Part shown: positions 1 through 53,230 of the stretch, in pieces
Layout: every line of letters starts with the position of its first letter
How positions within the stretch are numbered: the first letter of the stretch is position 1
Virus record (IMG/VR): IMGVR_UViG_3300009177_000028
Location: 1-64,000 of that record
Direction: 5' to 3' (one strand)
DNA length: 64,000 nucleotides
Notes under the pieces: generated by a model
The model's database searches: none
Told to the model about the DNA's origin: nothing
What the model saw: the letters and a program-made list of their open reading frames with translations, nothing else
Translations under genes and position numbers: made by a program

Positions 1-8
1 ATGGCGAA

Positions 9-992
9 ATGAACGCCTCATCCCTAAAGGATGCACTACAAACCCTTGTAAAGTATGCAGCAGTTCTTGAAGAGAACACTCCATCCAACATGGGTCTTGC
101 AGGTCAACCATCCCTAAGCGATGACAAGCGTGATGAGCTTATTTCTCGCGCTATTATGACCCAAGACGGAAAGATTGCTCTTGCTCAGGCAATGGCAAAC
201 CCAATTCGTCGTAACTTGGACTACCACGGTATTGCCCGTAGAGCCCTTGTTGTTGACCCTCTTCCACAAGGTGCAATGCCAACTTACGATAGAGATATCG
301 ATGTTGCCGCAGTTGTTATCTCCAGCAACGGTACTGGTCCAGAATCCCGCGTATTCGGTGACCGTGTAGTTGTTCCAGAATTCGAAATCTACGCTAACCC
401 AACGGTTCGTATCGCTGAAGTTAAGCGTCGTAGATTCAACGTAATTGACCGTGCAGTCCAAAAGGCTCGCCAGGAAATTATGGCACAAGAAGATGCAAAC
501 ATCTTCGCAGCTCTTGATGCAGCCGCATCTGTCGAGAACACCTTGACCGATATCGCTGATGCAGGTCTTCTAAAGAGAGACCTTGTTGAAATCAAGCAGA
601 ACATTGATCGTTGGGACTTAGTAACCACTAAGTACTTCATGAACATCAATGAGTTCACCGATATCCTAAAGTGGGGTTCAGGTGGTGGACAAGGCACTGG
701 TGGCGGAGATTTCGATCCTGTAACCATGCGTGAAGTTCTACAGACTGGTCTATACGCTCACATTTGGGGTACTGACATTATGGTTTCCAAGATTGTTCCA
801 CCAGGAACCATCTACGGTGCCGCAGACCCAGAGTTCGTTGGTGTAATGCCAATCCGTCAAGACATTGAAGTTCTTCCAGCAGACGAACCAAAGCAGTTGA
901 AGCTTGGTTGGGTAGTTTCCGAGATCATCGGTATCGCTATCGTCAACCCACGTGGTGTCGCAGCAGGTCGTAAGTCCGTAACTGTTGGTTAA
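9..992 (+). CDS. Major capsid protein (HK97-like fold)
   Basis: 327 aa with strong codon bias; segments such as LAQAMANPIRRNLDY, LVVDPLPQG and KLGWVVSEIIGIAIVNPRGV have the character of HK97-type capsid proteins; followed by a strong terminator and lies upstream of a full tail module. Confidence 0.85.
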   Translation: MNASSLKDALQTLVKYAAVLEENTPSNMGLAGQPSLSDDKRDELISRAIMTQDGKIALAQAMANPIRRNLDYHGIARRALVVDPLPQGAMPTYDRDIDVAAVVISSNGTGPESRVFGDRVVVPEFEIYANPTVRIAEVKRRRFNVIDRAVQKARQEIMAQEDANIFAALDAAASVENTLTDIADAGLLKRDLVEIKQNIDRWDLVTTKYFMNINEFTDILKWGSGGGQGTGGGDFDPVTMREVLQTGLYAHIWGTDIMVSKIVPPGTIYGAADPEFVGVMPIRQDIEVLPADEPKQLKLGWVVSEIIGIAIVNPRGVAAGRKSVTVG

Positions 993-1015
993 TTCGTTAA
1001 CTAATTAAAGTTTAG

Positions 1016-1048
1016 AAAAACCCTCTAGAGCAATCTAGAGGGTTTTTT
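1016..1048. terminator. Bidirectional intrinsic terminator between the capsid and cca genes
   Basis: AAAAACCCTCTAGA-GCAA-TCTAGAGGGTTTTT perfect hairpin with A-tract and T-tract flanks between convergent genes. Confidence 0.9.
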
Positions 1049-1052
1049 GTTT

Positions 1053-2294
1053 TTAGCACCCTGCCGCAAAATTAAGAAGGAAGCTCTTGGTGTTGTTTTC
1101 TGGATTCCGTAAAACTTCCAAATAACAAGCATCCAAAATGCTCTTAATTTGAGGTCCCGGCCTAATCCCAATGGTCAGTAAATCGTCTCCGTTTACCACC
1201 ATTTCTCTGCGGGTTAGGACCACAACACTCTCATACTTCTCGAATTGCTCCCTGGATAGGTATCCCAGGGCCTCAGTCAAATGTATAAATTGCTCTAAGG
1301 TATGGGTCCAAGGGTCAGGGCTATGGTTCTTGATAACCGCCATAAAGCTCTTATAGGCAAGATCCGTATCCTTAGATACAAAGTCTCGGTATCTTTCCAG
1401 TAATTGCAAAAGAAATGAAACTCTTTTAATTTCCCTATTGGAGAATTTTAAGGAAAATAGTTCTTGCTCAACCAAACCAAATGGGCAGTGTGAGTATAGA
1501 AACGCAAGGCGCGTTTCCAGATCGCCGGAACACCTATCAAGTAACGTAAGCTCATTCATATCATTTTCATGATTAAACAAAAGAGGACAAGCTACTTGAA
1601 GGGCACCAGATTGCTGTAAAAGTTGGAACCCAAAGGAGGCGTTTTCGCTCATGAGCGTCTTACAAAGCTCATCTTGAATTCGTTCCTTTGAGACCTTCTT
1701 TAGTGTTTCAATGTTTTCTTTCATCCCATTGAAAGTTTCGCCTTGGACATCATAACCAAATCGAGCAGCAAATCTTGCCACACGCATGATTCTGAGGCCG
1801 TCCTCTCGAAACCTTGCACCAGGACTTCCAACTGCACGAATGACTCCTTCATACAAATCTTGTTGACCGTTATAAGGGTCAACAATTCTTCCTGAAATAG
1901 GGTCATATGCAATTGCATTGATGGTTAAGTCTCGTCGGGCCAAGTCTTGATCAACATGAAGGACGAAGAAGACTTCTTCTGGCCTGCGCCCGTCCGTGTA
2001 CGCCCCCTCAATACGAAAGGTGGTAACTTCAAAATGATTTTCGATTCCTAGTCCCATCACCACTGTAACGGTTCCGTGCTGCAATCCAGTAGGAATCGTC
2101 TTTGGAAATAAAGCAATTACTTCCTCTGGAGAGGCATCAGTCGTGATGTCCCAGTCTTTTGGCGTGGCACCCATGAGCAGGTCTCGAACACACCCACCGA
2201 CAATGTAGGCTTGATAGCCATTGTTGCTAAGTATGCGACATATTTCTAATGCTTGCCGATTTACCCGTTGGGGTGAAAGGTTCGTGTTTTCCAT
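1053..2294 (-). CDS. cca: Class II CCA tRNA nucleotidyltransferase, without HD domain
   Basis: Motifs VGGCVRD, KDWDITT (DxD), flexible loop RIEGAYTDGRRP, RRDLTINA, EDGLR (EDxxR) and ERIQDEL; no HD segment; 413 aa. Confidence 0.93.
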   Translation of the reverse strand: MENTNLSPQRVNRQALEICRILSNNGYQAYIVGGCVRDLLMGATPKDWDITTDASPEEVIALFPKTIPTGLQHGTVTVVMGLGIENHFEVTTFRIEGAYTDGRRPEEVFFVLHVDQDLARRDLTINAIAYDPISGRIVDPYNGQQDLYEGVIRAVGSPGARFREDGLRIMRVARFAARFGYDVQGETFNGMKENIETLKKVSKERIQDELCKTLMSENASFGFQLLQQSGALQVACPLLFNHENDMNELTLLDRCSGDLETRLAFLYSHCPFGLVEQELFSLKFSNREIKRVSFLLQLLERYRDFVSKDTDLAYKSFMAVIKNHSPDPWTHTLEQFIHLTEALGYLSREQFEKYESVVVLTRREMVVNGDDLLTIGIRPGPQIKSILDACYLEVLRNPENNTKSFLLNFAAGC

Positions 2295-2301
2295 GGTGGG
2301 C

Positions 2302-2329
2302 AGTCTAAATCTTAAAAATTTGATGTCAA
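2302..2329 (-). promoter_or_regulatory. Sigma70-type promoter for cca, probably leaderless
   Basis: Minus strand TTGACA (2329-2324), 16 nt spacer, TAGACT (2307-2302); ATG follows 7 nt after the -10; no Shine-Dalgarno. Confidence 0.7.
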
Positions 2330-2375
2330 GGGAAGCGGATTAATATGCTGGGGATTGTAATAATACCACATAATA

Positions 2376-3110
2376 TTGACCCCTACCCGAAAGAAGCGTA
2401 TGAAAATAGACACAATTTCAGAGCTATATCAATTGATTTCCAGCGGAAGCAGTGATCTTCCAGCTAGGAAGCAGTCTATTCAGCTTAGAAAAGCTGGCCT
2501 TTCTGCCTATGCATCTGGCAGCGGTTTTACCAAAGTAGCTTTTGATACTCGTCGTATTGATCAGGAAACTGAATATAATCCTCGTAGAGGTTTACAGAAT
2601 TACAATCGTAGCGAAGCTTTTCTTTCAGAAGCAATGGGTCAAAAGCTTATTCATTTAGCTAAGCTTAAGGGCGTATTAGAAGATTTGAAAAAAGAATTTG
2701 GCAGAGAGCATGAGTGGCAGGATAGCAATGCACGTGTGCTTTTGTCAACACTTGATCAGGGCCTGCGCACTCTTCAAAAAGATGGCGACTATTCTGATGC
2801 TCAACCATCTCAAGGAAGCATTGACTACATTGAAGAACTCCTTCATGTTAGATATAGGCTTGCTTTTGATGATTTAACCAAACTTGGAAAAAGTGAATTA
2901 AAAAGAGTTATATTATCTAAGGATGAAGAGTTAACTCGTAAAGATGTTAACAAAGCTCTTGAAATTAGTAAGTCAGATGTAGCTTCACAAACTTATGATA
3001 CATTGATGGAAAAATTATTTGGTGGAGTTCGTGCTACGGCTGAAAACCCAGAAGTAGAAAGAACTGTTACTATTACTATTAAGGACAAGTTTGTTCCGGA
3101 GAAGAAATGA
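2376..3110 (+). CDS. Hypothetical protein (start may be ATG at 2400)
   Basis: 244-codon ORF, charged and helical; TGA overlaps the next ATG. Confidence 0.7.
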   Translation: MTPTRKKRMKIDTISELYQLISSGSSDLPARKQSIQLRKAGLSAYASGSGFTKVAFDTRRIDQETEYNPRRGLQNYNRSEAFLSEAMGQKLIHLAKLKGVLEDLKKEFGREHEWQDSNARVLLSTLDQGLRTLQKDGDYSDAQPSQGSIDYIEELLHVRYRLAFDDLTKLGKSELKRVILSKDEELTRKDVNKALEISKSDVASQTYDTLMEKLFGGVRATAENPEVERTVTITIKDKFVPEKK

Positions 3111-3799
3111 GCAGCGAGAGTGATTTCGCGTATTCTTTAAAGCATAACACACACTTCATAGTAAGAAATGTTACTTTAGATCGCAAGAAGACAATTAAGA
3201 TTTTCAACTATCCAATTCTTTATGGACAGACCCGTGATCTTTTGGCTATTCCGGGAATCCAAGAAGCGGACATTCGCGCCTCTTTATTGAAAGGTGTGCT
3301 GCGCCACAAGCTTTTATGTCATGACATTGAGTTAGTCTCCAGCAACGTTGATTTGCTTCAATTCAGTGATAAGCAGCGTAATTGGTTAAAGAGTTACGGA
3401 TTCTCTGAAGGTATTGAGGTTGGATGGGACGAACTAGATGGTTATGTTCAAAACGCTATTAATACTAGTGGTGGAGGAAGTTTGGAGCCAGCCCATAAGA
3501 CTTTGAGAGACCTTATTCATTTTATTGATGAAGGTCCAGGTGATGGATTCTTATCTGGTGCAGTTAAGGAAATTTTACCAACAGGATCCCCATTCCCAAC
3601 GAGCGTAACTTGGTATCTTGATTCGGGTAAGACTCTAAAGCTAGTAGAAAAATTTATCACTTATATTAATAATACTTTCCCATATATTATTCAATGGAAC
3701 ATGTATGATACGGATGGCGTATCTCTTATTCATACTGTCACCGACACAATTACATACAGTTCTGCATTCGAATCAACTAGAACGAGGATGATAAGCTAA
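3107..3799 (+). CDS. Probable virion structural protein
   Basis: 230 aa, translationally coupled on both sides; beta-rich C-terminal half; one DGY. Confidence 0.55.
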   Translation: MSSESDFAYSLKHNTHFIVRNVTLDRKKTIKIFNYPILYGQTRDLLAIPGIQEADIRASLLKGVLRHKLLCHDIELVSSNVDLLQFSDKQRNWLKSYGFSEGIEVGWDELDGYVQNAINTSGGGSLEPAHKTLRDLIHFIDEGPGDGFLSGAVKEILPTGSPFPTSVTWYLDSGKTLKLVEKFITYINNTFPYIIQWNMYDTDGVSLIHTVTDTITYSSAFESTRTRMIS

Positions 3800-4296
3800 T
3801 GTCCAATGAATCACCAGCATCGATTTTGTTTGACGAGTTGGGCAATCCAATTGGAGTAATGCTGGATGGTTACGTCTATCGTTTGCAAGTTCAAACCATA
3901 ATTGATGATGGTTATTTTCATGGTCCCGTAGCTGTTAAGGGGCCTAATCAAGCGGCGCTAGCAACTGACCCATCTCTTGTAGTTGCAATCTCCCCCAATA
4001 ATTCGTTTACGGTAACTGGGGCTAAGCCCTCTACTACCAATACCTCTAGTGTAGCCGCATCTACTACGAATGTGACTTTACTTTCTTCCAATTTAACAAG
4101 ATTGGGGGCGACAGTCTATAATGATTCAATGTCTTTATTGTACATAAAATTGGGACCGACCGCAACCTTATCAGATTTTACCATTAAGCTGTTTCCATTG
4201 TCTTATTATGAAGTTCCTTACGGATATACGGGCGAGATAGATGGGTTTTGGTCAAATTCTTCCGGATTTGCTAGAATAGGCGAATTAGTGCCTTAA
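3799..4296 (+). CDS. Putative head-appendage or decoration protein, paralog of 4387..5424
   Basis: C-terminal ~85 aa (VTLLSSNLTRLGATVYN...YEVPYGYTGEIDGFW...ELVP) aligns with the C-terminus of the next gene; 2 DGY. Confidence 0.55.
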   Translation: MSNESPASILFDELGNPIGVMLDGYVYRLQVQTIIDDGYFHGPVAVKGPNQAALATDPSLVVAISPNNSFTVTGAKPSTTNTSSVAASTTNVTLLSSNLTRLGATVYNDSMSLLYIKLGPTATLSDFTIKLFPLSYYEVPYGYTGEIDGFWSNSSGFARIGELVP

Positions 4297-4333
4297 ATTT
4301 CTATCATTAATTGAATATGAGTGTATAAGATAT

Positions 4334-4359
4334 AAAGAATTAAGTTAAAGAATTAAGTT
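4334..4359 (+). repeat. 13-bp perfect tandem duplication AAAGAATTAAGTT x2
   Basis: Directly visible in the intergenic spacer. Confidence 0.9.
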
Positions 4360-4386
4360 AATTTCTAACCTAAACGGGGATAAAAT

Positions 4387-5424
4387 ATGTCTGGAGTATC
4401 ACCTTCATCAGTTCTATTTAGCTCAGATGGCTATGAATTAGCCATCGTTGACGGTTCCAGCTTTATTGCCGGAACTCGTAGTATTCTAATTGCCGGTAAT
4501 GACGGTTCTAATACTCGTACAGTTTTGATCGACTCTACAGGAAGACAAGTAGTTGTCGGCGCAGGTACCGCAGGCTCACAAGCCGGTGGCGTCATCACCA
4601 TCCAAGGAGACCCGGCAGGTACACCTGTTCCAGTTTCTGGTACGGTTGCAGTTAGCTCTGTTTCCGGCACCGTAGCTGTAACTCAGTCTACTTCCCCATG
4701 GGTTGTAAGCGGAACAGTAACCTCTAACCAGGGTACTCCAAACAGCTTAGCTAACTCTTGGCCAATCACCATTACTGACGGTTATGGTAACATCCAAGGC
4801 TCTGCTGTTAACCCAGTTTATGTTCAGGGTAACATTACAGCTAACAACTCATCCGTAGGTGCAGATAACGCAGCTTTCCTATCCTTCGATACACAAGTTG
4901 GTGGCAAGGTTACTACAGCAGCTCCAACCTATACCAACGGTAACTTAAGCGCTCTATCTCTAACCACTCTTGGTGGTTTGCGTATTGACGGCGTCTATGC
5001 TGGAGCAACTGCAACCTCTACTGCTACTGATATGATGGTAAGTGGTGGTTATGTAACAACCGCAGCACCAAGCTATACAAACGCTACACTAAATGCTTTG
5101 TCCTTGGACACTTCTGGTAATTTGCGTGTCACTGGATTCGTAACAACTAACAAGGCTTCCTCCTCTGCTGTTACTTCCACTTCCGCATCAACAAGCAGCG
5201 TTACAATTTTGGCAAGCAATGCTACCAGAGTTGGCGCAACTGTCTTCAATACCAGCTCCAAGGTTATGTATGTCAAGCTTGGCGCCACTGCAAGCACTTC
5301 CAGCTTTACCACCCAATTGTTTGCTAACTCCTACTGGGAAGTTCCAAACGATTACACCGGCGTTATTGACGCTGTCTGGGCCGGTACTGGCGGAGCTGCA
5401 ATCGTAACTGAATTGACTCCATAA
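4387..5424 (+). CDS. Putative head-appendage or fibre protein
   Basis: Ser/Thr/Gly-rich 345 aa; shares N- and C-terminal modules with 3799..4296 and the GxDGxNxRxxxxDSxGR / PVSGTV repeats with 5540..8212. Confidence 0.6.
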   Translation: MSGVSPSSVLFSSDGYELAIVDGSSFIAGTRSILIAGNDGSNTRTVLIDSTGRQVVVGAGTAGSQAGGVITIQGDPAGTPVPVSGTVAVSSVSGTVAVTQSTSPWVVSGTVTSNQGTPNSLANSWPITITDGYGNIQGSAVNPVYVQGNITANNSSVGADNAAFLSFDTQVGGKVTTAAPTYTNGNLSALSLTTLGGLRIDGVYAGATATSTATDMMVSGGYVTTAAPSYTNATLNALSLDTSGNLRVTGFVTTNKASSSAVTSTSASTSSVTILASNATRVGATVFNTSSKVMYVKLGATASTSSFTTQLFANSYWEVPNDYTGVIDAVWAGTGGAAIVTELTP

Positions 5425-5455
5425 TTAATCTAATAGATTAAATAAAAATTCCGAG

Positions 5456-5484
5456 AAGCCTGCTATTTATTAGCAGGCTTTTCT
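5456..5484 (+). terminator. Intrinsic terminator
   Basis: AAGCCTGCTA-TTTAT-TAGCAGGCTT followed by TTCTATTTT. Confidence 0.8.
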
Positions 5485-5539
5485 ATTTTCTACATAATTT
5501 AGTATAACTAGCGTAGTCGTGTCTTTAAGAGGATAGAAT

Positions 5540-8212
5540 ATGGCAAGAGTTGAAGGTGGCGCTGTAACCATACTTACAGATTGGCCAGGATTAAAAAATC
5601 AGATAGACACCAGAAGTCTAAATTAGAGATTCGAAGAAACTGATGTTTCTTATGAAATTTTTGCAATTGATGGACAATATTTTTACACCGCACCTATCTA
5701 CAAGTCTGGAAAGGCCCCAGATAATCAAGCTACCTATGATACATATCGTGCTGATTTCGAAGCTAATTACAAAAATAGAATTACTGATTTTAACGCCACT
5801 GATCCAATTTTTCTTACTAATGTAGATGGTTACTCTGTTATTCTTAAGGACGGGGCCTCTCCAACTGCGAATGATGGATATGGTATTGCTGTAATTGGAA
5901 TCGATGGTTCCAACTATAGAATGCTTAAAATGGATTCGTCGGGTCGTCCAGTCATGGTCGGTGCTGGTACTGCCGGAAGTGCTGCTGGAGGAATTGTTAC
6001 TGTTCAAGGCGATCCTAGTGGAGTTCCAATTCCTATCTCAGGAAATATTACTGCTTCTAATGCTTCTGTAGGAACAAACGATGCCGCAATTCCTGGATTC
6101 TCTAATTTAATTGGTGGTTCCGATGGAACAAATCTTCGTTCGCTTAGAGTTTTTGACGTTGACTCTGGTGGCGGGCAGCAATGGGTTCTTGGCGTTGGTC
6201 TTCGCAAAGCTGCTGGTGGCGGTTCTGTTGAACTAGGCACATCTTCAGACCCGATTAGGACGGATCCAACTGGGACTACTACTCAGCCAGTTTCTGGTAC
6301 CGTTACCGCCAACCAAGGTGGAACTTGGACAGTTCAACCGGGTAATACAGCCAATACTACTCCGTGGTTAATTACTATTAGTCAAGGTGGAAATGCGGCC
6401 ACCGTAACTGGCGCCAATGCTTTGAAAGTAGATGGTAGTGCAGTTACACAACCAGTTTCTGGTACAGTAACTGTTACCCAATCAACCGCTGCAAATCTTA
6501 GGGCACAGTTAGCCTCTGAAACATCTACTGGCTCTTCTATTCCATCTACCGCATTGATGATTGGTGGCTCAGATGGTTCTCTTTTGAGAGCACTTTTTGT
6601 CGATTCATCTGGTCGTCCATTTGTAGTTGGAGCGGCAGCTAATGGCGCTGCTGTTGCTGGTAACCCAGTATTGGTGGCTGGCTCTGATGGCACTAATGCT
6701 CGTTCGATTAAAACAGCCAATGACGGAACTGTTAGAGTCGATCCAACCGGAACAACTACTCAACCAGTATCAGGAACTGTTGCTGCAACTCAGAGTGGTA
6801 CTTGGACGGTTCAGCCAGGTAATACGGCTAATACTACTCCATGGTTAATTACTATTAGTCAAGGTGGAAATTCAGCTACTGTTACTGCATCAAACGCTTT
6901 AAAGGTAGATGGATCTGCCGTTACACAACCGGTTTCTGGAACCGTGACGGTAACTCAAGCAACAGCATCAAATTTACGTTCTCAAACATCTTCAGAATCA
7001 AATACGGGCTCGGCTGTACCAACACAAGCCTCAATGGTTGGTGGAACAGATGGAACTAATTTAAGAGCAATATCTGTTGATTCTTCTGGCAGACAGATAG
7101 TTATCGGGGCCGCTGCCGATGGTTCTCCAATTACTGGTAATCCAGTATTGATGGCCGGTCAAGATGGAACCAACGTTCAAAGCATAGCTACTGATGGATA
7201 TGGTCGTGTACAGGTGTCCATTACTGGAACTTCTAGTACTCAAGTAGAAGGGCGAGCTGCTGACGGTTATACTCAGGTAGGAAATCCTGTATCTATAGCT
7301 GGCGTTGATGACGATGGTTATGTTCAAAATTTACATGTAGATAGTTCAGGTAATTTGCAAGTAGTTTCCGTATCCGCAGTTGGTACTTCCACCACCCGAA
7401 GGATTAGCCAAAATATTGCAACTAACGTTACTATTTATAATGATTATACGGTTCCGGTTGGGCAAACTCTTTCCGTATCATCTTATTATATGGGCGGTGG
7501 AAGTGCCGGAAGATCGACTCTAGCAAAACATACTTCCGCCAACGTTGCATTTATTACCAACGGAGATTTTGAAAACGGAACACAGGTTGCAGCTTGGGCC
7601 GCCGTTACCGGAAGTTTTACAGCCCCAACTCCAGATTCAAATTCAACACAATTCCAAACTGGTGCCGCTTCTATGAGGTGGACATATGCCAACAGCGCTA
7701 CTGCATTGGCAAGAAGACAAACTTTTACTCCGGTTATTGACTTGTCTGGGTATAGATATCTTCGTGTAAAATTCTTTAACGACGCAGCTACCGGTACAAC
7801 TAGAACTATTTCTATCATCGTTGCGTCAGGTACACCAACTAGAACATATTCGTTGTCTGGCACTCTTGGTTCGGCCCCATTTACTGCCAATACTTGGATC
7901 ACATTAACAGCAGATTTAGATAACCCAACCACTTCGACAGGAACGGGATTTGATTTAACGGCCGTAAGCACTATTACTTTACAGATGCAAGATGCCGCTA
8001 ACAAAACAGGTACCGTGTACTGGGATACCCTACGCCAAGAAGATCAATTAGATGTTAGACATCGTCTATATACCTCTACAGGAGATACTGTAAGTGCACC
8101 TTTGAATCCGGTTGAAACATTCAATGCAAGCGAATCAGTTTATTTAATTGCTAGAAATATAGGCAATACTACAAACGAATATACTGCAATATGGTCGGGG
8201 ACATTAGTTTAA
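5540..8212 (+). CDS. Large repeat-containing fibre or appendage protein (890 codons) with an in-frame TAG at 5624-5626
   Basis: ATG at 5540 with AAGAGGA RBS is in frame with the 5921 ORF; the extension aligns without gaps to the N-termini of 8225 and 9275; C-terminal carbohydrate-binding-like beta-sandwich; 5 DGY. Confidence 0.7.
6263..7216 (+). repeat. Two tandem ~477-nt (159-aa) coding repeats
   Basis: Units start DPTGTTTQPVSGTV at 6263 and 6740; protein nearly identical, third codon positions diverged. Confidence 0.85.
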
Positions 8213-8224
8213 AAGAGGGAAGAA

Positions 8225-9271
8225 ATGGCAATTAATTTTGGTGGAAATGTAGTAATATATGAGCAGTGGACAGCATTAAAAACAACCGCTGTTAATAATA
8301 CTTTATCTATTCAATATTTAGAGAGTAGTGATAGGTATTCAATATTTGTAATTGATGGTGGTGTTGTTAGAGCATGCACTATATATACCGGAACTATACC
8401 TAATTTCGTTGATCCTGATGTTGGTGATCCATCAGATCAATCAACTAATGATTCGTACAAATCAGACTTTGAAACTAACTATAAACCTACGGCTAATTCC
8501 CGTATTTCTAGAACCGATAGTTTCGGAGATCCAATTCATTTGGATTTCGTGGATGCCGTTGCATTTGGGTTAATACCAAACGCTACTAATGGAACAGCTA
8601 ATGGATATATTGGCACGGCTGCAATAACTACAGTTGCTGTTAGGGCTACAAGTTATATTGCTGATACAACCGCAGCTCAGAGAAGCGTCGTTTCTTCTAG
8701 TGCCAACGATACTTCTGCGGGTACTGGAGCACGAACTGTCAAGATTACCTATTACGATAATTCTGTTAATGGACCATTTACTGAAACAGTTACTATGAAT
8801 GGCACCACACCAGTTAATACCACCAATACTAATATTCGTTTTATAGAAAAAATGGAGGTAGTGACAGTCGGCTCAACGGGATCTAATGCAGGCACTATTT
8901 CACTAAAACAAAATACGGGTGGTGGAGGAAGTACCCTCGGATCTATTGCGATTAGCGACAATCAAACTTACTGGGCACATCATTATGTAGCTGCCGGGAA
9001 AACTGCACACATTTATGCTGTTAGGGCAGGCTCTTCAATCACTAATGGAATAGTAAACGTAATTGCTACAGGCGATCCAACTGCTACCAATTTACCATCC
9101 AAAAACATCTCTAATGGTATAAGAATGGGATCAGCCAATCAGGTAGTATCATTTTATGAATGGGTGGCCCCACTTTCAGTTGTTGGTCCCAATTTTGTGT
9201 TTATCAACACCAAGCCAGATGCAGTGACCGCCTCCACTATTTATGCTTCTTTTGACTATTCGGAGTTTTAA
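8225..9271 (+). CDS. Putative virion appendage protein, paralog of 9275..10288
   Basis: Shares the N-terminal module (W..LK...L.IQY...Y.IF.ID...DFETNYK) and the C-terminal module (AAQRSV.SSSA.D.SAGTG.RT..ITYYDNS.NGP...RFIEK...TYWAHHYV) with the next gene. Confidence 0.6.
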   Translation: MAINFGGNVVIYEQWTALKTTAVNNTLSIQYLESSDRYSIFVIDGGVVRACTIYTGTIPNFVDPDVGDPSDQSTNDSYKSDFETNYKPTANSRISRTDSFGDPIHLDFVDAVAFGLIPNATNGTANGYIGTAAITTVAVRATSYIADTTAAQRSVVSSSANDTSAGTGARTVKITYYDNSVNGPFTETVTMNGTTPVNTTNTNIRFIEKMEVVTVGSTGSNAGTISLKQNTGGGGSTLGSIAISDNQTYWAHHYVAAGKTAHIYAVRAGSSITNGIVNVIATGDPTATNLPSKNISNGIRMGSANQVVSFYEWVAPLSVVGPNFVFINTKPDAVTASTIYASFDYSEF

Positions 9272-9274
9272 CCT

Positions 9275-10288
9275 ATGTCAGTAAATTTTAACGCCAATGT
9301 CACAATTTCAAATACTTGGACCAACTTTAAATCAATTACTACGTCTAAGACATTGCCTATTCAATATGATGATGATGGTATAACATACACTATTTTTGCT
9401 ATTGATGACCCCATGATTTATATTTGTACTATTTGGAAAGGTACTGTACCGAGTGGTGTTATTGATGGTGGTTATTCTCAGGCCCAAAATGATACTGATG
9501 AGTCTGACTTTGAAACAAACTATAAGCCGTCAGCTAATAAGAACGTAAGTATTCTTTGGACGGCTGAAAGAGCTATAGCGGCCGGCATTATTTTGAACGG
9601 ATTGTCAGGAGCTATTGGTGGGTATGTAGGAACTGCATCTGCTTCTTTGGTGACAGTGCGCGCGACCGCTTATACAGAACCAAGCTCAGCAGCGCAACGT
9701 TCTGTAGCCTCATCCAGTGCCAGTGATTCATCTGCTGGAACCGGCACTAGAACCATTAGAATTACCTATTATGATAATTCGATGAATGGTCCATTAACTG
9801 AAGATATTACTATGAATGGAACTAGTAACGTAAATACAGTGGCAACTAACATTAGATTCATAGAAAAAATTGAATCACTAACTGTTGGATCTAACGGCGG
9901 AAATGTTGGAACTATTACTTTATTTGGATCAACTAACGGCGGTGGTGGTACAGTAGGAACAATTGCTGTTGGTGATGGTAGAACTTATTGGGCTCATCAT
10001 TATGTTAGGCCAAGCAGAACTATGTTTATTAGAAAGTTAATTCTTAGCACTGGAACTGGTGGTACTGCTGCTAATGCCTCCATTAGAACGGCCACTCCAT
10101 TAACCGCTAACGCATTTGAAAACCAAATTGGTACACAGTATAGAGTTGTAAATGGTACTACTGGTAATGTAATTGATTTTGATGCACTTGCTGCTGTAAA
10201 TGGACCTGCCAGAGTAACTATTTATGTAAAGCCTGATGCAACTACCGCGAGTACATTTTATGCTAACTTTTCATACTATGAGATTTGA
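9275..10288 (+). CDS. Putative virion appendage protein, paralog of 8225..9271
   Basis: Aligns along its length with the upstream gene. Confidence 0.6.
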   Translation: MSVNFNANVTISNTWTNFKSITTSKTLPIQYDDDGITYTIFAIDDPMIYICTIWKGTVPSGVIDGGYSQAQNDTDESDFETNYKPSANKNVSILWTAERAIAAGIILNGLSGAIGGYVGTASASLVTVRATAYTEPSSAAQRSVASSSASDSSAGTGTRTIRITYYDNSMNGPLTEDITMNGTSNVNTVATNIRFIEKIESLTVGSNGGNVGTITLFGSTNGGGGTVGTIAVGDGRTYWAHHYVRPSRTMFIRKLILSTGTGGTAANASIRTATPLTANAFENQIGTQYRVVNGTTGNVIDFDALAAVNGPARVTIYVKPDATTASTFYANFSYYEI

Positions 10289-10353
10289 TCGTCCGACATT
10301 TGCATAATTAGATATTGATCGTGAAAGATAATCTTTTACTTAGGGGAACAAAC

Positions 10354-11262
10354 ATGGTTGTTAATCCACTTTCTACTCCTCCTATTCCAGTTAATAGCAA
10401 TTTGGATAGAGGAATGTTCGTATGGGTCACATCTAGTGCATCTCAAGATCCATTAGATACTGATACCGATCAGACCGCACTTTTAAATTTCTGCGGAACC
10501 AATAAAGTTAACGTACTATTTCTTGACATGTGGGTCTATCTTGGTGGTGCTAATTGGACTGCTACCAAATTAAGCAGACTACGTCAGTTTCTAGATGTCG
10601 CTCATAAGTCTGGCATCAAAGTTTATGCTTTGACCGGAAATATTGATTGGGCAATTAATCACTCTTGGGTTATGAAGAACATTGTTCAGAACCTACAATG
10701 GTTTAACGAGCAAGCAACTAGCCCAACTCAGAAATTCGATGGTGTAATGCTTGATGTCGAATATTGGACCGATACAAACCAAACTTCGGCTGTTAGCTTG
10801 CCAGGTCTTTGTGATTTGATTAAGGCTTTCCAAAACAGACTTGGACTTCCAGTTGGAGTCTTCACTGGTTTTTATCTAAAAGATAATACCAGCACTTGGG
10901 CAACTGTTGATTACAATGGCAAAAATGCTCAGGATGGAGAACACTTGATGGATGTTGCTGATTTCTGTGTAGTTGGTACTTATAGAGATCATGCTAGTGA
11001 TAACGGTACCGATGGTCCTGGCCAAATTTCTTTGTTCCAGCCATGGTATGATTATGCCTCTCAATCCGGCAAGAATTTTGGATTGTTTGCAGGTTCCGAA
11101 ACCACGAATGTCAGCCCCGCTTATATTACATACTTTGGCGCAACCAAGGCTTCCATGGAAACCGAGCACACCTTGATTTCTAATGCATTCCAAACCACTT
11201 CTAACTCCGTATTTATGGGTCAAGCTGTCCATAGCTATGACGGCTGGAAGGCAATGTCTTAA
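10354..11262 (+). CDS. Glycoside hydrolase-like TIM-barrel protein
   Basis: Alternating beta/alpha pattern with AHKSGIKVYALTG and FDGVMLDVEYW, typical of GH-superfamily barrels; ATG at 10354 has a GGGG RBS (track start 10315 is TTG). Confidence 0.55.
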   Translation: MVVNPLSTPPIPVNSNLDRGMFVWVTSSASQDPLDTDTDQTALLNFCGTNKVNVLFLDMWVYLGGANWTATKLSRLRQFLDVAHKSGIKVYALTGNIDWAINHSWVMKNIVQNLQWFNEQATSPTQKFDGVMLDVEYWTDTNQTSAVSLPGLCDLIKAFQNRLGLPVGVFTGFYLKDNTSTWATVDYNGKNAQDGEHLMDVADFCVVGTYRDHASDNGTDGPGQISLFQPWYDYASQSGKNFGLFAGSETTNVSPAYITYFGATKASMETEHTLISNAFQTTSNSVFMGQAVHSYDGWKAMS

Positions 11263-11283
11263 TTTTAAGACTTTAAAATGATG

Positions 11284-11318
11284 AATGCCCGGTTGGAAAC
11301 AGCCGGGCATTTCTATTT
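11284..11318 (+). terminator. Intrinsic terminator
   Basis: AATGCCCGGTTG-GAAA-CAGCCGGGCATT followed by TCTATTT. Confidence 0.85.
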
Positions 11319-11370
11319 CTATCTGCTTAATCTGATATATTCTTTAGAGACCCGTACCGGTGAGGTTTAA

Positions 11371-12234
11371 TTGAGGGCTTTGGTGTTAAGTGGCGGCGGC
11401 AGCAAAGGTGCGTACCAAGTAGGTGCTCTCAAGCATATCTTGGGTGAGGTGGGGACTGTCTATGATGCTTTTTGTGGCGTTTCTGTTGGTGCAATTAATT
11501 GTGCCTCTTTGGCTATGTTCGGTTATGGAGAAGAGAAACAGTCTATCTCTATTCTTGCTGATATGTGGTCTACGTTAAATACGACCAAAATCTACAAGAG
11601 ATGGTTTCCTTTTGGACGATGGCACGCTCTTTGGAACAAAAGCTTTTATGATAGTTCACCTTTACATCAATTACTAAGGGACACTATTCATTTAGATAAG
11701 ATTAGAGCTAGTGGTAAAAAGGTTAGTGTTGGAACCGTTTCACTTAGTTCTGGAAAATATACTATTTTTGACCAAAATTCTGATCATTTTATCGATGCGG
11801 TTATTGCATCCTCATCTTTTCCAGGGATGTTAACCCCTGTAAAGTTCTTGGGGCAGCTTTGGACAGATGGCGGGGTCAAAGAAATCTCTCCTATTAAGAA
11901 AGCGGTCGAGTTAGGTGCCGATATTATTGATGTTATTATCACTTCTCCACATACTCGTGTGAAAAGATTCATCGAAGAGCCCACTACGGTTGAAATTTTA
12001 AAGCGTAGCATCGACTTATCTACTGATAAGATCATGGCAAATGACATTGAGAAGGTTGAAATGCATAATCGTCTGGCTCAGGCAGGGTTAGAGGACCGAA
12101 AATTCGTAAAAATTAACATTTTGCGCCCCGATTACAACCTAATCGAAGACCTGCTTGATTTCAGACCTGAAAAAATTAAAGAAATGATGGAAAAGGGTTA
12201 CGCTGACGCTAAATACAAGTATACAATGGAATAA
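11371..12234 (+). CDS. Patatin-like phospholipase
   Basis: GGGSKG glycine loop, GVSVG nucleophile elbow and DGG catalytic Asp motif all intact; TTG start with GAGGT RBS. Confidence 0.92.
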   Translation: MRALVLSGGGSKGAYQVGALKHILGEVGTVYDAFCGVSVGAINCASLAMFGYGEEKQSISILADMWSTLNTTKIYKRWFPFGRWHALWNKSFYDSSPLHQLLRDTIHLDKIRASGKKVSVGTVSLSSGKYTIFDQNSDHFIDAVIASSSFPGMLTPVKFLGQLWTDGGVKEISPIKKAVELGADIIDVIITSPHTRVKRFIEEPTTVEILKRSIDLSTDKIMANDIEKVEMHNRLAQAGLEDRKFVKINILRPDYNLIEDLLDFRPEKIKEMMEKGYADAKYKYTME

Positions 12235-12259
12235 TTGTACATATTAAGTGGAGAGATAA

Positions 12260-12616
12260 ATGGCTTTTAAACACGTCAGCAAAAAGACCCATGGTCCTAG
12301 CTATGATTATTATCAAACAGCTACTGTCAACTGGGCTCAATTTGGCGCATTAGATGGTTATACGTCTGATGGCTATGGTCCGGATATGATTATCCCATTT
12401 TCTACCTATGGTGTCATGTTTACCAATGAGACAAGCGGCCAAATCATAGAATATTCCTTCAACGGTGTCGATGTACATGGTGTTCTAGATGGAACAGCCA
12501 CCAGCACCACCAGAGTTGTTACTTTCCTCAATCGTGTGGTCTCATTAATTTGGTTTAGAGTGAAATCTGGATCAAGTTCAGCGGCTATCACGGTAACAGC
12601 GTGGGGAATACGTTAA
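12260..12616 (+). CDS. Small beta-sandwich protein, probably virion-associated
   Basis: 118 aa, beta-rich, contains DGYTSDGY. Confidence 0.5.
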   Translation: MAFKHVSKKTHGPSYDYYQTATVNWAQFGALDGYTSDGYGPDMIIPFSTYGVMFTNETSGQIIEYSFNGVDVHGVLDGTATSTTRVVTFLNRVVSLIWFRVKSGSSSAAITVTAWGIR

Positions 12617-12633
12617 CTTGATATAAAGTAAGT

Positions 12634-12963
12634 ATGAGAAAGAGTAAGCTAATCAAGAACAAGTGCGAGATTGAAACGTGCACGGTTACCGACCCTAATT
12701 TGCTTCAATTGCATCATATTATAGAAAGAACGGAAGTTAATACCAATAATAACAAATTTAACCTCGCAATTTTGTGTGCTAACTGTCATGGTTTGACACA
12801 TAGCGGGCGCCTTAAGATTATCGGAGTTTACCCATCTACTCAATTACCAAATGGTAGAACATTAGTTTATGAATTAGATGGTAAAAAGAACATTGAAGGA
12901 ATAGATACTCCTTATGTTGAATTTAAGAACAAGTCATTTAAATTGTATGGAGATGATAAATGA
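12634..12963 (+). CDS. HNH endonuclease
   Basis: CxxxxC...LHHII...N...NLAILCANCHGLTH zinc/HNH pattern. Confidence 0.85.
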   Translation: MRKSKLIKNKCEIETCTVTDPNLLQLHHIIERTEVNTNNNKFNLAILCANCHGLTHSGRLKIIGVYPSTQLPNGRTLVYELDGKKNIEGIDTPYVEFKNKSFKLYGDDK

Positions 12964-13283
12964 AGAAAGACATTGATAAGACATTTTTGAGAGACATCTC
13001 TGGTGATTTCACCGCAATTGATGCTACTGATCCAAATAACGTCAGCAAGAAAGTTCTTCCTGAGCAGGAAACACGCAAAAGACTGTTGACGCATGCACGC
13101 ATGCTTGGATTTGAGAAAGACATGCTACTACTTTTCGCCAAGATTGATAAATTGATGCGTAACTGCACCAATGACAAGGAACGAAGCGACATCGCCAAGT
13201 TAGGAGCTGTCGAAGTCTACAAGCTTCTCGGTGGTGGCGGCGAATTGTATGTAGACGGACAAATGGTTTGTAAAGACAAGTAA
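12960..13283 (+). CDS. Hypothetical protein
   Basis: 107 aa; ATGA overlap with the HNH stop. Confidence 0.7.
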   Translation: MKKDIDKTFLRDISGDFTAIDATDPNNVSKKVLPEQETRKRLLTHARMLGFEKDMLLLFAKIDKLMRNCTNDKERSDIAKLGAVEVYKLLGGGGELYVDGQMVCKDK

Positions 13284-13291
13284 GGAATATT

Positions 13292-13525
13292 ATGACTGAT
13301 AGTAAATTTGTGGGTGTAGTTTTGTGGTTCGATCCTAAGCGTGGTTTTGGCTTTATTGGATGGGAAAAAGATGGTGTCAAACAAAAAGATTTGTTTGTTC
13401 ACTTCTCTGATATCTCTTGCGAAGGTTTTAAGACATTGCTCAAAGATCAGAAGGTCTCTTTTTCAATAGGAAATAACTTCAATAATCAGCCTAAAGCGAC
13501 TGAAGTAGAAGTGCTTAAGCATTAA
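13292..13525 (+). CDS. Cold-shock domain protein (CspA family)
   Basis: GVVLWFDPKRGFGFI (RNP1), DLFVHFSDI (RNP2), GFKTL and QKVSF. Confidence 0.95.
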   Translation: MTDSKFVGVVLWFDPKRGFGFIGWEKDGVKQKDLFVHFSDISCEGFKTLLKDQKVSFSIGNNFNNQPKATEVEVLKH

Positions 13526-13816
13526 TTATTTCTTAAGAAAAATTTGTACAATTTGGATCACAAGAGAAAGTAATCCAGTAATAAATAGCACTTGAATCTT
13601 AAATAGATCTTTATTGGTCTCTTCAGTTTGATCGACTATTTTATCTATTTTCTTATCTTGTTCAGCTTGTGTCTTTTTAATGTCCGAAAGGGCCTCAATG
13701 ATTTCTTCATTTTGCTCAGCCACTTCGGTTTCAATTTCAATAGATTTCTTATTGACTTCTAGAATTAATTCCAGGTCCTGTTTTTTGACATGTTCGCTGT
13801 AGGTTTTCTCCGGCAT
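13526..13816 (-). CDS. Coiled-coil protein with a C-terminal transmembrane helix (XhlA or holin-like)
   Basis: Acidic coiled coil followed by IQVLFITGLLSLVIQIVQIFLKK; ATG at 13816 has a GAGGG RBS. Confidence 0.55.
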   Translation of the reverse strand: MPEKTYSEHVKKQDLELILEVNKKSIEIETEVAEQNEEIIEALSDIKKTQAEQDKKIDKIVDQTEETNKDLFKIQVLFITGLLSLVIQIVQIFLKK

Positions 13817-13840
13817 AGGACCCTCAAATAACAAAATTGG

Positions 13841-14020
13841 TTATTTCTTTATTTGTTTACGTTCTTTTCTTACCTTGATCTTGGACATGACTTTGTCCAC
13901 TTTCTCATTCAATTTTTTGTAATCTTCCACAGTAGTTTCTTGGAGATCCTCTAACGGTAGAGGCTCGGTAATAACAATAGCTTCACTGGCAACAGCGACT
14001 GAGGATCTTCTACGTGGCAT
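13841..14020 (-). CDS. Small hypothetical protein (59 aa), below the ORF-track cutoff
   Basis: MPRRRSSVAVASEAIVITEPLPLEDLQETTVEDYKKLNEKVDKVMSKIKVRKERKQIKK; fills the gap between two minus-strand genes; AAGGTG upstream. Confidence 0.7.
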   Translation of the reverse strand: MPRRRSSVAVASEAIVITEPLPLEDLQETTVEDYKKLNEKVDKVMSKIKVRKERKQIKK

Positions 14021-14021
14021 A

Positions 14022-14414
14022 TTACACCTTTTTATTTATGGGTTTGTTATCTAGCTCAACTATGTCAGCATTTTGTTTGGCGAACTCTTCATCAGAAACG
14101 TTAAGTTCGTCATATTGTTCTTCTTTAATGCTTAGCAGAGACCTCTCTCTAGATGGAATGAAGGTCTCCTGAGCTAGTGGAACATTGGCTTTTATAATCT
14201 CTGGTGCTACCTTGCGCACTACCAGTTTGTTTCGTTTTTTGAAAACGGAGCCGGAATCACATGATTTCCGAAGCTGGTCTCTTGTATATTGATAATGCTT
14301 TTTATCCAATAAATTCACTGATGAATAGGCTTTAATTGTTAAGTTTAGGTCAGCTAAACTAACATTCATCGGGGAAATATTGGTTATCCAGAAAGCATCA
14401 ACTTCTTTTTTCAT
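14022..14414 (-). CDS. Hypothetical protein
   Basis: 130 aa; N-terminus weakly resembles the N-terminus of 3107..3799. Confidence 0.7.
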   Translation of the reverse strand: MKKEVDAFWITNISPMNVSLADLNLTIKAYSSVNLLDKKHYQYTRDQLRKSCDSGSVFKKRNKLVVRKVAPEIIKANVPLAQETFIPSRERSLLSIKEEQYDELNVSDEEFAKQNADIVELDNKPINKKV

Positions 14415-23842: not shown

Positions 23843-24454
23843 TTAACGCTCTATTTTGCGTCTTTCTTTAGATGGCGTTAGATAAGCTTGTGAATTATTA
23901 GCTAGCTTTTCGAAAACAGTTGCTTTTTGAAGTAGCCATGCATGCTTTTGCTTCTCTGGCCCTTTTAGAGGGAAAGTAACAAAGATGCGATCATCTCCAT
24001 GGTCCCCACCCCAGAGTACCAGCTCTGACACCGAAAATTCTACTGGATCAATATCAAAATCATCTATTTCTTTTTCGGCGTACGACAGTGTGATATGTGG
24101 CTTATAGTCTTTGAAGGTTTTAGAAAATTCTATTTCTTCATCATCAAATTTCTTAGCAATTTTCTCGCGTAGTTCATGTAGCTCGGCTGATTTGACTTGA
24201 GCCACGATAGCGCAGGTATCACCTCTTTTAGGGAAGCAGATTACCTTTTCAGTCATAGCAATGAATGGTTTAACTTTGGAAACCACATCATAAGTAATTT
24301 CTAAGGCTCTGGCTAGCTCAGAAATCGGCCAATTATCTTCAAAATGTAACATAGTGATGTGCATTTCGGAAGGTGCCGTGGTTGTGCCAGGCACTTCGAT
24401 GCCAGTTAATAAACGTCCAGTTTCGTGAGGGATTCTAATTCCTAAAAAAGCCAT
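23843..24454 (-). CDS. 2H phosphoesterase (ThpR/LigT or Acb1-like)
   Basis: Two HxT motifs, MHITM and KPHITLSY, at the usual spacing; C-terminal extension of ~35 aa. Confidence 0.9.
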   Translation of the reverse strand: MAFLGIRIPHETGRLLTGIEVPGTTTAPSEMHITMLHFEDNWPISELARALEITYDVVSKVKPFIAMTEKVICFPKRGDTCAIVAQVKSAELHELREKIAKKFDDEEIEFSKTFKDYKPHITLSYAEKEIDDFDIDPVEFSVSELVLWGGDHGDDRIFVTFPLKGPEKQKHAWLLQKATVFEKLANNSQAYLTPSKERRKIER

Positions 24455-51008: not shown

Positions 51009-51028
51009 GTTGATATATACAAGGTATA

Positions 51029-53230
51029 ATGAGTCCTTGCTCGCCGAATGATGTATCTGTAAATATCCCTGATGGTCCTAGCGGTCCCGCTATTCCACCA
51101 TTTGGAACTCCCTTTTCTCTTAGTCTACCCAGTTTAAATCCATTTCCAGATGGATTCCCTGAAGATTTATTAGATCTTTTAGATAGGTTACAGCTTCTCA
51201 TTCCTCCGGGTGCTTTGAAGCCCCAATTAAATCCCAATTTTGGTAAGGATGTGTTCGACGCTATTATGAAGCTGTTGGACCAGTTCATGCCATTTTTGAT
51301 GCTGTATAAGTTCTTCCTTCCTATTCTAGAACTTATTATTTGTATTATTGAAGTTCTATGCGCTTTAATGAATCCATTCAAACTAATCAGAGCTTTGAAT
51401 AGGTTGTTCACTCGTTGTATTCCAGCATTCCTTAATTTATTTCCAATCTTTGCATTAATAATTATGATTATTTCATTGTTGCTATTAATTTTAGCACTGA
51501 TTGAATACATCATTGCTCAGATCTTAAAATTTATTAAGATGATTTTAAGAAACATTATAGCTCTTGAGAAAGCTTTCTCTGATGGCGACCAGAACAGTGT
51601 TTTGGCCATCGCCAAGAAGCTTGGATCCTTGCTATGTATTTTCCAGAACTTGTTTGTTCTTTTCGCTATCTTTAATATTATCATTCAAATCATCAAGGAT
51701 ATTCTTTCTTTGATCTTCTCCATCCCCCCATGTGACGATGGCGACCCATCTGATGAAGATGGTTGCTGTACTCCTGATGTATGCCCAGCGATTGTCAAAT
51801 CTGATTACCAGAGATTTACTGGAACCTTTAAGTATTTGCCAGCAGCTTCCGTCCAAACCTCTTTGACGTTGCCTGCCATCTTTGGAAGTACTTTTAACTT
51901 TGATGTTAGACCAGAAAGTTGGCAGTTTTACGATTTGGGACAAGAGCAGGCTCAGCAGTTCAGAAACATTTTTGATGCGTATGATGTAACAATTGTACCA
52001 AAGCCAATTTTCTTCCCAACTGATTCTACCTACAGCGCTTCAACTGATCCAAAGCAGGCCCCGTACTTGCTGGCCGTTAGAGTATTTTATGACCCAGCTC
52101 AATGGGGAAGATTTGATCCAAACATTCATGGTGTCCCAAGATACGTCAAATTCTTTAACATCATCATGACGCAAGTTCCAACTACTACTTTGACAGAGGG
52201 CGACTTAACTACTCAGACAGTTAATAATGCCGTAGCGATCTTAGCTGGTGGATATGGTTACGAAGATGATGGGACAACTCCTTTGAAGGGGTTTGCTTCC
52301 GATGGAGTTACTCAAATTGGTGACCAGGCTCGATTTGAGAATTTCTTCCACATGCCAAGTCAGACCTCAACTAATCCGGACTTGTCTATTAATGATGGCT
52401 ACACATTCTTCAATGTAGACTATACGTTCCATCCAAATGTTGCTCCATTGCTTACTAAGAATTTGGTAACTTTAGGATGCATTCCTTCGATTGCTCTAAA
52501 TAGAGCCTTCGTAAATAACATTTTTGCTGGTGATATTTCTCTAAAGACTCAATTGTTAGGCAGTTTGGTTAACGGTGCCGGATTCCCAAATCCAGGAGCA
52601 GCTCAAGAGTGCTTGACCAACGCTCTAACTAACTTGCGTTCCAACATGACCGCTGCCGGAGTCGCACAGTTCCAGACAACTGCTAACTTGTGTTTGCAGA
52701 AACTAAAGGATGATACTAACGGCGCCCTTGGGCAATTAGTAGGCATTGGTTTTGATCCTTGCAAGAGTGTATTTACAGCAGAACCAAAGTCACAATTTAC
52801 TAGTGAACCAATTCTAGTTACAGTTGACATCAATGAGAGAAATGGTTTGTCCTTAACTAAGGGAATTTCCGCCGATGTAGCTAGCAATCTAGCCGCCAGA
52901 ATTACGGCCCACGCTACCTTTGGTGTTGTCTCTAATTTTACTTACGATGGATATCAATCATTCACGGCTCACCTTACCAGCAAAACACCCGGTAGTGGAA
53001 CCATCATGATTTCTTTTGATAACAATACTTTCTGTACCAACGTATTACCAACTACTGGTGACGGAACTCCAACTCATACTCTACAATCAGTTGACTATCA
53101 ATTCGTCTACACTCCAGCCAATGCAATTGCTCCTCTTGCTCCAACTGGCGATGGCGATACGGATGGCGCTCAGCCAAGAAGAGGTCCAGAGGACATTTCT
53201 GGTGATGCAGGCGGAAAGGACGGTAGTTAA
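51029..53230 (+). CDS. Hydrophobic, Cys-rich baseplate-region protein with a C-terminal Ig-like domain
   Basis: Three long apolar helices in residues ~85-230; 14 Cys; invasin-like beta-sandwich near the C-terminus; 2 DGY. Confidence 0.55.
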   Translation: MSPCSPNDVSVNIPDGPSGPAIPPFGTPFSLSLPSLNPFPDGFPEDLLDLLDRLQLLIPPGALKPQLNPNFGKDVFDAIMKLLDQFMPFLMLYKFFLPILELIICIIEVLCALMNPFKLIRALNRLFTRCIPAFLNLFPIFALIIMIISLLLLILALIEYIIAQILKFIKMILRNIIALEKAFSDGDQNSVLAIAKKLGSLLCIFQNLFVLFAIFNIIIQIIKDILSLIFSIPPCDDGDPSDEDGCCTPDVCPAIVKSDYQRFTGTFKYLPAASVQTSLTLPAIFGSTFNFDVRPESWQFYDLGQEQAQQFRNIFDAYDVTIVPKPIFFPTDSTYSASTDPKQAPYLLAVRVFYDPAQWGRFDPNIHGVPRYVKFFNIIMTQVPTTTLTEGDLTTQTVNNAVAILAGGYGYEDDGTTPLKGFASDGVTQIGDQARFENFFHMPSQTSTNPDLSINDGYTFFNVDYTFHPNVAPLLTKNLVTLGCIPSIALNRAFVNNIFAGDISLKTQLLGSLVNGAGFPNPGAAQECLTNALTNLRSNMTAAGVAQFQTTANLCLQKLKDDTNGALGQLVGIGFDPCKSVFTAEPKSQFTSEPILVTVDINERNGLSLTKGISADVASNLAARITAHATFGVVSNFTYDGYQSFTAHLTSKTPGSGTIMISFDNNTFCTNVLPTTGDGTPTHTLQSVDYQFVYTPANAIAPLAPTGDGDTDGAQPRRGPEDISGDAGGKDGS

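Follow-up and report, generated by a model that had tools for sequence, protein, structure and literature searches.

A lone in-frame amber codon in a fibre gene of a huge soil phage: probable assembly artefact or recent nonsense allele

The window analysed here is the whole 64,000-nucleotide (nt) stretch of DNA that forms positions 1 to 64,000 of the IMG/VR virus record IMGVR_UViG_3300009177_000028. The element in question is a gene of 890 codons on its plus strand (5540–8212), which appears to encode a phage fibre and whose reading frame is broken at codon 29 by a single TAG. We conclude, with a probability of roughly 0.85, that this TAG is an assembly or consensus artefact, or else a recent nonsense allele, of an ordinary intact fibre gene, and that it carries no evolved signal; programmed read-through or recoding at codon 29 is, in our judgement, extremely improbable. 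The normal codon 29 of the phage is TTT, encoding Phe, and one contig alone reads TAG. If the TAG were taken literally under the standard code, translation would end after 28 residues, and the 763-residue open reading frame (ORF) that follows would be merely the longest leftover frame, with neither a ribosome-binding site nor the N-terminal domain (N-domain) of the protein. The truncated 763-residue form is thus presumably not made or assembled.

Codon 29 across assemblies and relatives

A single contig of 204,387 bp, classed as linear in IMG/VR and estimated by CheckV to be 48% complete, provides the window as its first 64 kb. The same DNA is public as the Joint Genome Institute (JGI) contig Ga0105248_10000031 from sample 3300009177, in which the fibre gene is called as the 763-residue ORF beginning at 5921 (P0124). 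Megablast found no matches among phage GenBank records, and the sole tblastn match covers 12%, in one uncultured 595-kb phage.

A first-pass annotation of this DNA had placed the start of the gene at an ATG at 5540 with a ribosome-binding site, in frame with the ORF at 5921, and described an 890-codon gene with a single amber codon. We reached the same structure: the sequence AAGAGGA precedes the ATG, the distance from 5540 to 5921 is 381 nt (127 codons), and the translation of 5540–8212 runs to a TAA terminator and is interrupted only once, at codon 29. ATG 5540 is a credible gene start because a terminator-like hairpin at 5453–5483 closes off the upstream gene. The alignment of the N-terminus with those of the two genes that follow, at 8225 and 9275, was also reproduced, with 29–36% identity over residues 1–80 and the TAG facing an Ile in both. 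Using jackhmmer, we found the same N-domain in dozens of homologues, in each case at the N-terminus, with E-values of 1e-30 to 1e-40; since the domain recurs in this way, the segment from 5540 to 5921 is coding sequence rather than a frame left open by chance.

What the phage normally carries at codon 29 can be read from other assemblies of the same DNA. A word search with X at codon 29 recovered P0003, a protein of 890 residues that is the read-through product but with Phe29, on three other contigs: ENA ERZ27252350 (129,716 bp), JGI 3300025941 Ga0207711_10000216 (61,776 bp) and Logan SRR6056557 (13,524 bp). When the sibling JGI contig Ga0207711_10000216 (L079) was compared with window positions 8–14212, there were 3 differences in 14,205 bases, two of them at the adjacent positions 5625 and 5626 (TT in the sibling, AG in the window) and the third 12 nt from the end of L079. 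We also compared the Logan contigs of four sequencing runs over window positions 3501–8500, and three of these (X1, X2 and X3) cover codon 29, whereas X7 does not reach it. In X1, the possible source run, one 13,524-nt contig spans all 5,000 bases and differs from the window only by A>T at 5625 and G>T at 5626. X2, which comes from a separate rhizosphere study, and X3, a groundwater strain that is about 1% divergent, both have T,T at these two positions.

The same picture emerged from the relatives. Phe is found at the site in a 98% identical variant (P0123) and in a 78% identical orthologue (P0004), and every one of the 16 sequences in the orthologous clade has it too. In an alignment of 38 distinct N-domains, the column for residue 29 holds Phe in 16, Ile in 8, Leu in 5, Tyr and His in 3 each, Pro in 2 and Met in 1, and a stop in none. 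Conservation of the stop, as expected under read-through or recoding, was therefore not observed, with TTT/Phe present in five other contigs of the phage as well as in the 1%-divergent strain. The two features expected of a sporadic allele or an assembly error were both seen: the change is private, with a sense codon in every other assembly, and the rest of the gene contains no further stop or frameshift. The lack of any other lesion points to a recent event. One proposal of the first-pass annotation, that the codon arose by a recent nonsense mutation or by an error in sequencing, fits this evidence, except that the change is not the single-base TTG>TAG that it assumed; the orthologues have Phe, encoded by TTT, so that two adjacent bases differ (T5625A and T5626G). 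It had also named the orthologue comparison as a means of refuting read-through, and that comparison returned Phe in the close orthologues.

The change from TTT to TAG thus involves two adjacent substitutions, while the assemblies differ from one another at a background rate of roughly one base in 10 kb. A second stop of this kind was found elsewhere in the same pair of assemblies. Between the sibling contig and window positions 18974–43515 there are five differences, three of which, at 36780, 36790 and 36794, are all G>A and fall inside a 15-nt stretch; the one at 36794 turns TGG into TGA in the sibling, splitting its sheath gene (window 35616–38438) into pieces of 392 and 434 residues. That gene is intact, at 940 residues, in the window, in the ENA contig and in the Logan contig. 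Private, clustered changes that create stops are noise that recurs among these assemblies. Each JGI assembly has its own such stop in a structural gene, contradicted by the others, a pattern that fits minority or erroneous assembler paths, or low-frequency defective genotypes, but not a designed signal. A diversity-generating retroelement was considered as the source of the change at codon 29 and rejected: the contig encodes no reverse transcriptase, and on the coding strand it is T rather than A that was altered.

Four points weigh against this interpretation. An adjacent two-base substitution is unusual as an assembler or sequencing error. The TAG is already present in the public JGI contig and its gene call, which excludes its introduction after deposition. 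The comparison was made at the level of contigs, which drop minority variants, so a subpopulation carrying the TAG is possible. Finally, the amber-suppressor tRNAs, RF2 and avoidance of TAG terminators in this lineage, described below, would make a TAG allele tolerable.

Two observations bear on how the assemblies relate to one another. Three independent short-read assemblies, namely those that gave the window contig, Ga0207711_10000216 and the contig of Logan SRR6056557, start no more than 17 nt apart, within the capsid-like gene (window 1–17), while the ENA contig continues upstream past this shared start; a repeat, a break in coverage or shared reads may explain the coincidence. In addition, 3300025941 may have been assembled anew from a sample of the same project as 3300009177.

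Translation genes of the lineage and suppression of UAG

The explanation that survives best beside an artefact or a recent nonsense allele is a real TAG allele that the phage's own tRNA(CUA) reads late in infection, so that the fibre is made at a reduced or conditional level and the allele represents an early step of recoding. We consider this improbable, but the lineage has much of the machinery that it would require. Outside the window, the contig encodes an RF2 (G000:C1 147016–148113; L083:829–1926) that matches TIGR00020 (prfB) with 400 bits at a cut-off of 370; it is full-length, has the SPF and GGQ motifs, needs no frameshift site and has homologues in two relatives, G002 and G005. A release factor that spares TAG, which recoding would call for, is thereby present, and the search for a release factor gene suggested in the first-pass annotation was answered in the affirmative. 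Terminator usage points in the same direction. In the window, our own ORF call gave 40 ORFs ending in TAA, 5 in TGA and none in TAG among 45, approximately as had been claimed. Across four genomes of the lineage (G000, the contig from which the window is taken, and the relatives G001, G003 and G005), the fractions of ORFs of at least 100 residues that end in TAG are 3/144, 5/193, 7/254 and 7/397 (2–3%); as TAG makes up 25–29% of the three stop trinucleotides in these genomes, TAG terminators are about 10-fold depleted. There are none at all in 1–90 kb of G000 or in 200–400 kb of G005.

A suppressor tRNA was found in the relatives rather than in the phage itself. A search of the 204-kb contig with ARAGORN and with Rfam RF00005 returned no tRNA of any kind, and so no tRNA with the CUA anticodon that had been proposed as a check. 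This absence is uninformative in a contig that is 48% complete, because the tRNA(CUA) genes of relatives sit in the half of the genome that lies outside it: by synteny (capsid, structural genes, RF2, GC-rich arm), the contig corresponds to about 256–480 kb of the complete 481-kb G005, and 55 of the 56 tRNA matches in G005 are in its other half. There, the relatives have a translation island comprising four tRNA-Thr genes, an M23 peptidase, PTH2, one or two tRNA(CUA) genes, IF3 and tRNA-Arg(CCU). This island is present in every relative for which the region is available, seven in all: G001 (144.8–151.9 kb), G003 (70.6–77.5 kb), G005 (169–175.5 kb) and the metagenome loci L165, L167, L168 and L170, in all four of which a search with ARAGORN also found a tmRNA. 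The statement that large phages encode suppressor tRNAs consequently holds for this lineage, with conserved tRNA(CUA) genes in these seven relatives.

The tRNA(CUA) genes are of two conserved types, and Thg1 is encoded nearby in some relatives. An exact search of IMG/VR with the type-B gene returned two known relatives only, and similarity to the other tRNAs of these phages assigned no clear amino acid to either type. A conserved gene that lies beside tRNA(CUA) in the relatives, used as a query for this phage's own island, recovered P0150, P0148, P0126 and P0130, all from other samples. Look-ups of window 51014–53227 and of the capsid protein gave no matches.

Taken together, these features look like a standard-code, stop-depleted, suppressor-bearing state of the kind that Borges et al. 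(bioRxiv 10.1101/2021.08.26.457843) propose for the precursors of recoding; in their proposed order, stop depletion is followed by a suppressor tRNA and then by in-frame stops in structural genes, and they report RF2 in TAG-recoded phages (bioRxiv 10.1101/2021.08.26.457843). Read-through of a TAG is accordingly mechanistically plausible in this lineage. Given the tRNA(CUA) genes of the relatives, the RF2 and the depletion of TAG terminators, a phage that carried tRNA(CUA) together with a real TAG allele would probably have a leaky allele rather than a null one. It is conceivable, if doubtful, that the window caught a first in-frame TAG segregating in a late fibre gene, tolerated through late UAG suppression, and so offers a snapshot of the first step of recoding.

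Other observations speak against it. Every other contig over the site has TTT/Phe, and the Logan contig of X1, the possible source run, is among them; relatives that do carry tRNA(CUA) have no in-frame TAG in their conserved long genes; the tRNA was not found in the phage's own 48%-complete contig; and codon 29 specifies a residue that is conserved as hydrophobic or aromatic and opens a predicted strand, where the residue inserted by a suppressor would be uncertain. The first-pass annotation had further suggested that amber read-through would make this appendage conditional. This idea did not survive, as the other contigs and the relatives carry a sense codon and there is no genome-wide use of in-frame TAG. 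The TAG as an evolved signal is without support, and an artefact or recent nonsense allele remains the reading that we prefer.

Internal restart and genetic code

Translation could instead restart at the ATG at 5921 and yield a functional 763-residue fibre that lacks the N-domain, an explanation to which we give very little weight. Natural homologues that lack the N-domain and keep the shaft and C-terminal domain do exist (P0008, 882 residues, and a 794-residue gene in L001). These homologues, however, begin about 35–50 residues upstream of the equivalent of M128, no Shine-Dalgarno-like sequence precedes 5921, the putative restart lies 295 nt past the stop, and the norm for the phage is the intact 890-residue form.

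Our analysis of stop codon usage bears on whether TAG might be a sense codon throughout the genome. With TAG read as sense, greedy ORF coverage of G000 moved from 0.914 to 0.925, and coding density was not raised in any of the four lineage genomes. In the part of the phage genome with 41% GC, no long gene other than that for the fibre has an in-frame TAG, and frames interrupted by TAG are not more frequent than the TGA and TAA controls. A homology screen of conserved long genes in the four genomes, with antisense ORFs filtered out, found an in-frame TAG in none of them. A surplus of same-frame open segments following TAG in G001 was traced to antisense frames of real genes and discounted. TAG does serve as a terminator: in G000, counted over its 41%-GC part, 3 of 144 ORFs end in it, and one of these, at 92464, marks a C-terminus that is conserved in G003 and G005. 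Neither expectation of recoding, in-frame TAG in many genes or the absence of TAG as a terminator, was borne out, and genome-wide reassignment of TAG, TGA or TAA was rejected on the grounds that coding density does not rise and interrupted genes are not in excess. The genetic code is standard. A phage-wide alternative code resembling code 15, with TAG as sense throughout, can draw on the RF2 and on the first 90 kb without TAG terminators, but we dismiss it almost entirely in view of the single in-frame TAG among about 144 long ORFs, the lack of any gain in coding density in four genomes, interrupted frames no commoner than in the controls, and a TAG that terminates at a conserved C-terminus.

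The fibre gene, its surroundings and known systems

The gene lies in a structural block, with the capsid-like gene at 9–992, sheath and tube-initiator-like genes downstream, and three fibre-like paralogues in tandem (Table 1). We used AlphaFold2 on 27 aligned N-termini and obtained a confident alpha/beta domain over residues ~11–80, with a predicted local distance difference test (pLDDT) score of 86–92, in which residue 29 is the first residue of a predicted strand (29–33); Foldseek found no match to this domain in the PDB. The model of the C-terminal domain matched 8qpg_TA (a haloarchaeal virus turret protein, 8e-8), CBM11, CBM27, CBM28 and CBA120 TSP4. The fibre belongs to no Pfam or PHROG family, with only a below-threshold Pfam match to MG4, and TRF reported no tandem repeats. 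The N-domain presumably acts as a module for attachment to, or docking on, the virion, and the modelled C-terminal domain is presumably a glycan-binding, receptor-binding tip. We infer that the gene of this huge soil phage encodes a modular receptor-binding fibre, built from a docking module, a Gly/Thr-rich shaft and a CBM-like tip.

Table 1. Features of the fibre gene and its immediate neighbours in the window.
Feature	Position	Strand	Remarks
Terminator-like hairpin and T-run	5453–5483	+	13-pair stem with 6 G-C pairs; closes upstream gene 4387–5424
Shine-Dalgarno-like AAGAGGA	5527–5533	+	6 nt 5' of ATG 5540–5542
Full fibre gene, 890 codons and TAA	5540–8212	+	Sole lesion at codon 29; intact form is P0003
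Conserved N-terminal alpha/beta domain, residues 1–80	5540–5779	+	Common to three adjacent genes and dozens of homologues
In-frame TAG, codon 29	5624–5626	+	5625–5626 AG, versus TT (TTT, Phe) in all other assemblies
763-residue ORF of public record	5921–8212	+	First in-frame ATG/GTG/TTG past the TAG; no Shine-Dalgarno-like site
Internal duplication, copy 1 (~238 nt), Gly/Thr-rich shaft	6263–6500	+	79% identical to 6740–6976
Internal duplication, copy 2	6740–6976	+	Partner of 6263–6500
C-terminal beta-sandwich, residues 640–890, CBM-like fold	7457–8209	+	Predicted by AlphaFold2 (pLDDT 81) and Foldseek
Paralogue 1, 348 residues	8225–9271	+	N-terminal domain shared; C-terminal domain different
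Paralogue 2, 337 residues	9275–10288	+	N-terminal domain shared

Fibre modules are shuffled among the relatives, which combine the N-domain, the repeats of the shaft and either of two types of C-terminal domain in various ways (window 5540–10288; L001 5974–9603). P0004, for example, keeps the N-domain and has a C-terminal domain of the type found in the genes at 8225 and 9275, and in the 882-residue P0008 and the 794-residue orthologue in L001 the tip is kept and the N-domain absent.

Several neighbouring genes were noted in passing. A 413-residue protein of the CCA-adding enzyme/poly(A) polymerase family (window 1053–2294, minus strand; PolyA_pol, PolyA_pol_RNAbd and tRNA_NucTran2_2) is encoded next to the capsid-like gene. 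The 203-residue product of 23843–24454 (minus strand) has precomputed matches to Acb1 (PF23474) and 2'-5' RNA ligase and is a possible anti-CBASS phosphodiesterase. Among the fibre genes are those for a patatin-like phospholipase (11371–12234, plus strand) and a cold-shock-domain protein (13292–13525, plus strand). Outside the window, the terminal arm of G000 (~160,000–204,387) has a GC content of about 54%, compared with 41% elsewhere, a low ORF coverage of about 0.75 and numerous TGA and TAG stops, and there is an island at 154–156 kb, with a bacterial-type histidine kinase at 154629–155846. G005, which IMG/VR classes as a provirus, has a comparable GC-rich arm (400–480 kb) with weak homology, which makes the arm a feature of the lineage and no obvious chimera.

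For practical purposes, the normal product of the fibre gene should be taken to have 890 residues, the public 763-residue call from 5921 is too short, and users of the contig should take codon 29 as Phe; as we read it, the amber codon is no regulatory device. The broader interest lies in the clade of huge phages from soil, rhizosphere and groundwater to which this phage belongs. These combine a standard code and rare TAG terminators with tRNA(CUA), RF2, tmRNA, IF3 and PTH2, and they are candidate precursors of recoding, providing a setting that would buffer nonsense alleles.

The gene and its stop codon can be compared with several known systems. The fibre resembles modular phage fibres and tailspikes with CBM-like tips in its location in a structural block, its shared N-terminal module, the repetitive make-up of its shaft and its beta-sandwich tip, although it differs from them in matching no Pfam or PHROG family and in having an N-domain unmatched in solved structures. 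The A1 minor coat protein of Q-beta is a low-copy structural product of occasional stop codon read-through. In Q-beta, however, the stop is conserved and stands at the end of a complete protein, whereas the stop in the window interrupts a folded domain after 28 residues and is not a conserved one.

With code-15 phages, in which TAG is reassigned to Gln (Lak, crAss-like, Agate and other phages, with suppressor tRNAs and RF2), the lineage has in common tRNA(CUA) in relatives, RF2 and strong depletion of TAG terminators, and the TAG in the window falls in a late structural gene. In contrast to code-15 phages, four genomes of the lineage show no accumulation of in-frame TAG, code 11 gives them a normal coding density, TAG terminates genes, and the lone in-frame TAG is not shared even by assemblies that are 99.98% identical. 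The remaining comparison is with classical amber (am) alleles of phage structural genes, such as those of T4 and lambda, and with point-mutation pseudogenes or consensus errors of metagenome assemblies. The TAG in the window differs from the T4 and lambda am mutants in that it comes from an environmental assembly rather than from selection on a suppressor host, lies two base changes from TTT and is known from contigs alone; as in all of these, it is a single UAG in an otherwise intact late gene whose relatives have a sense codon.

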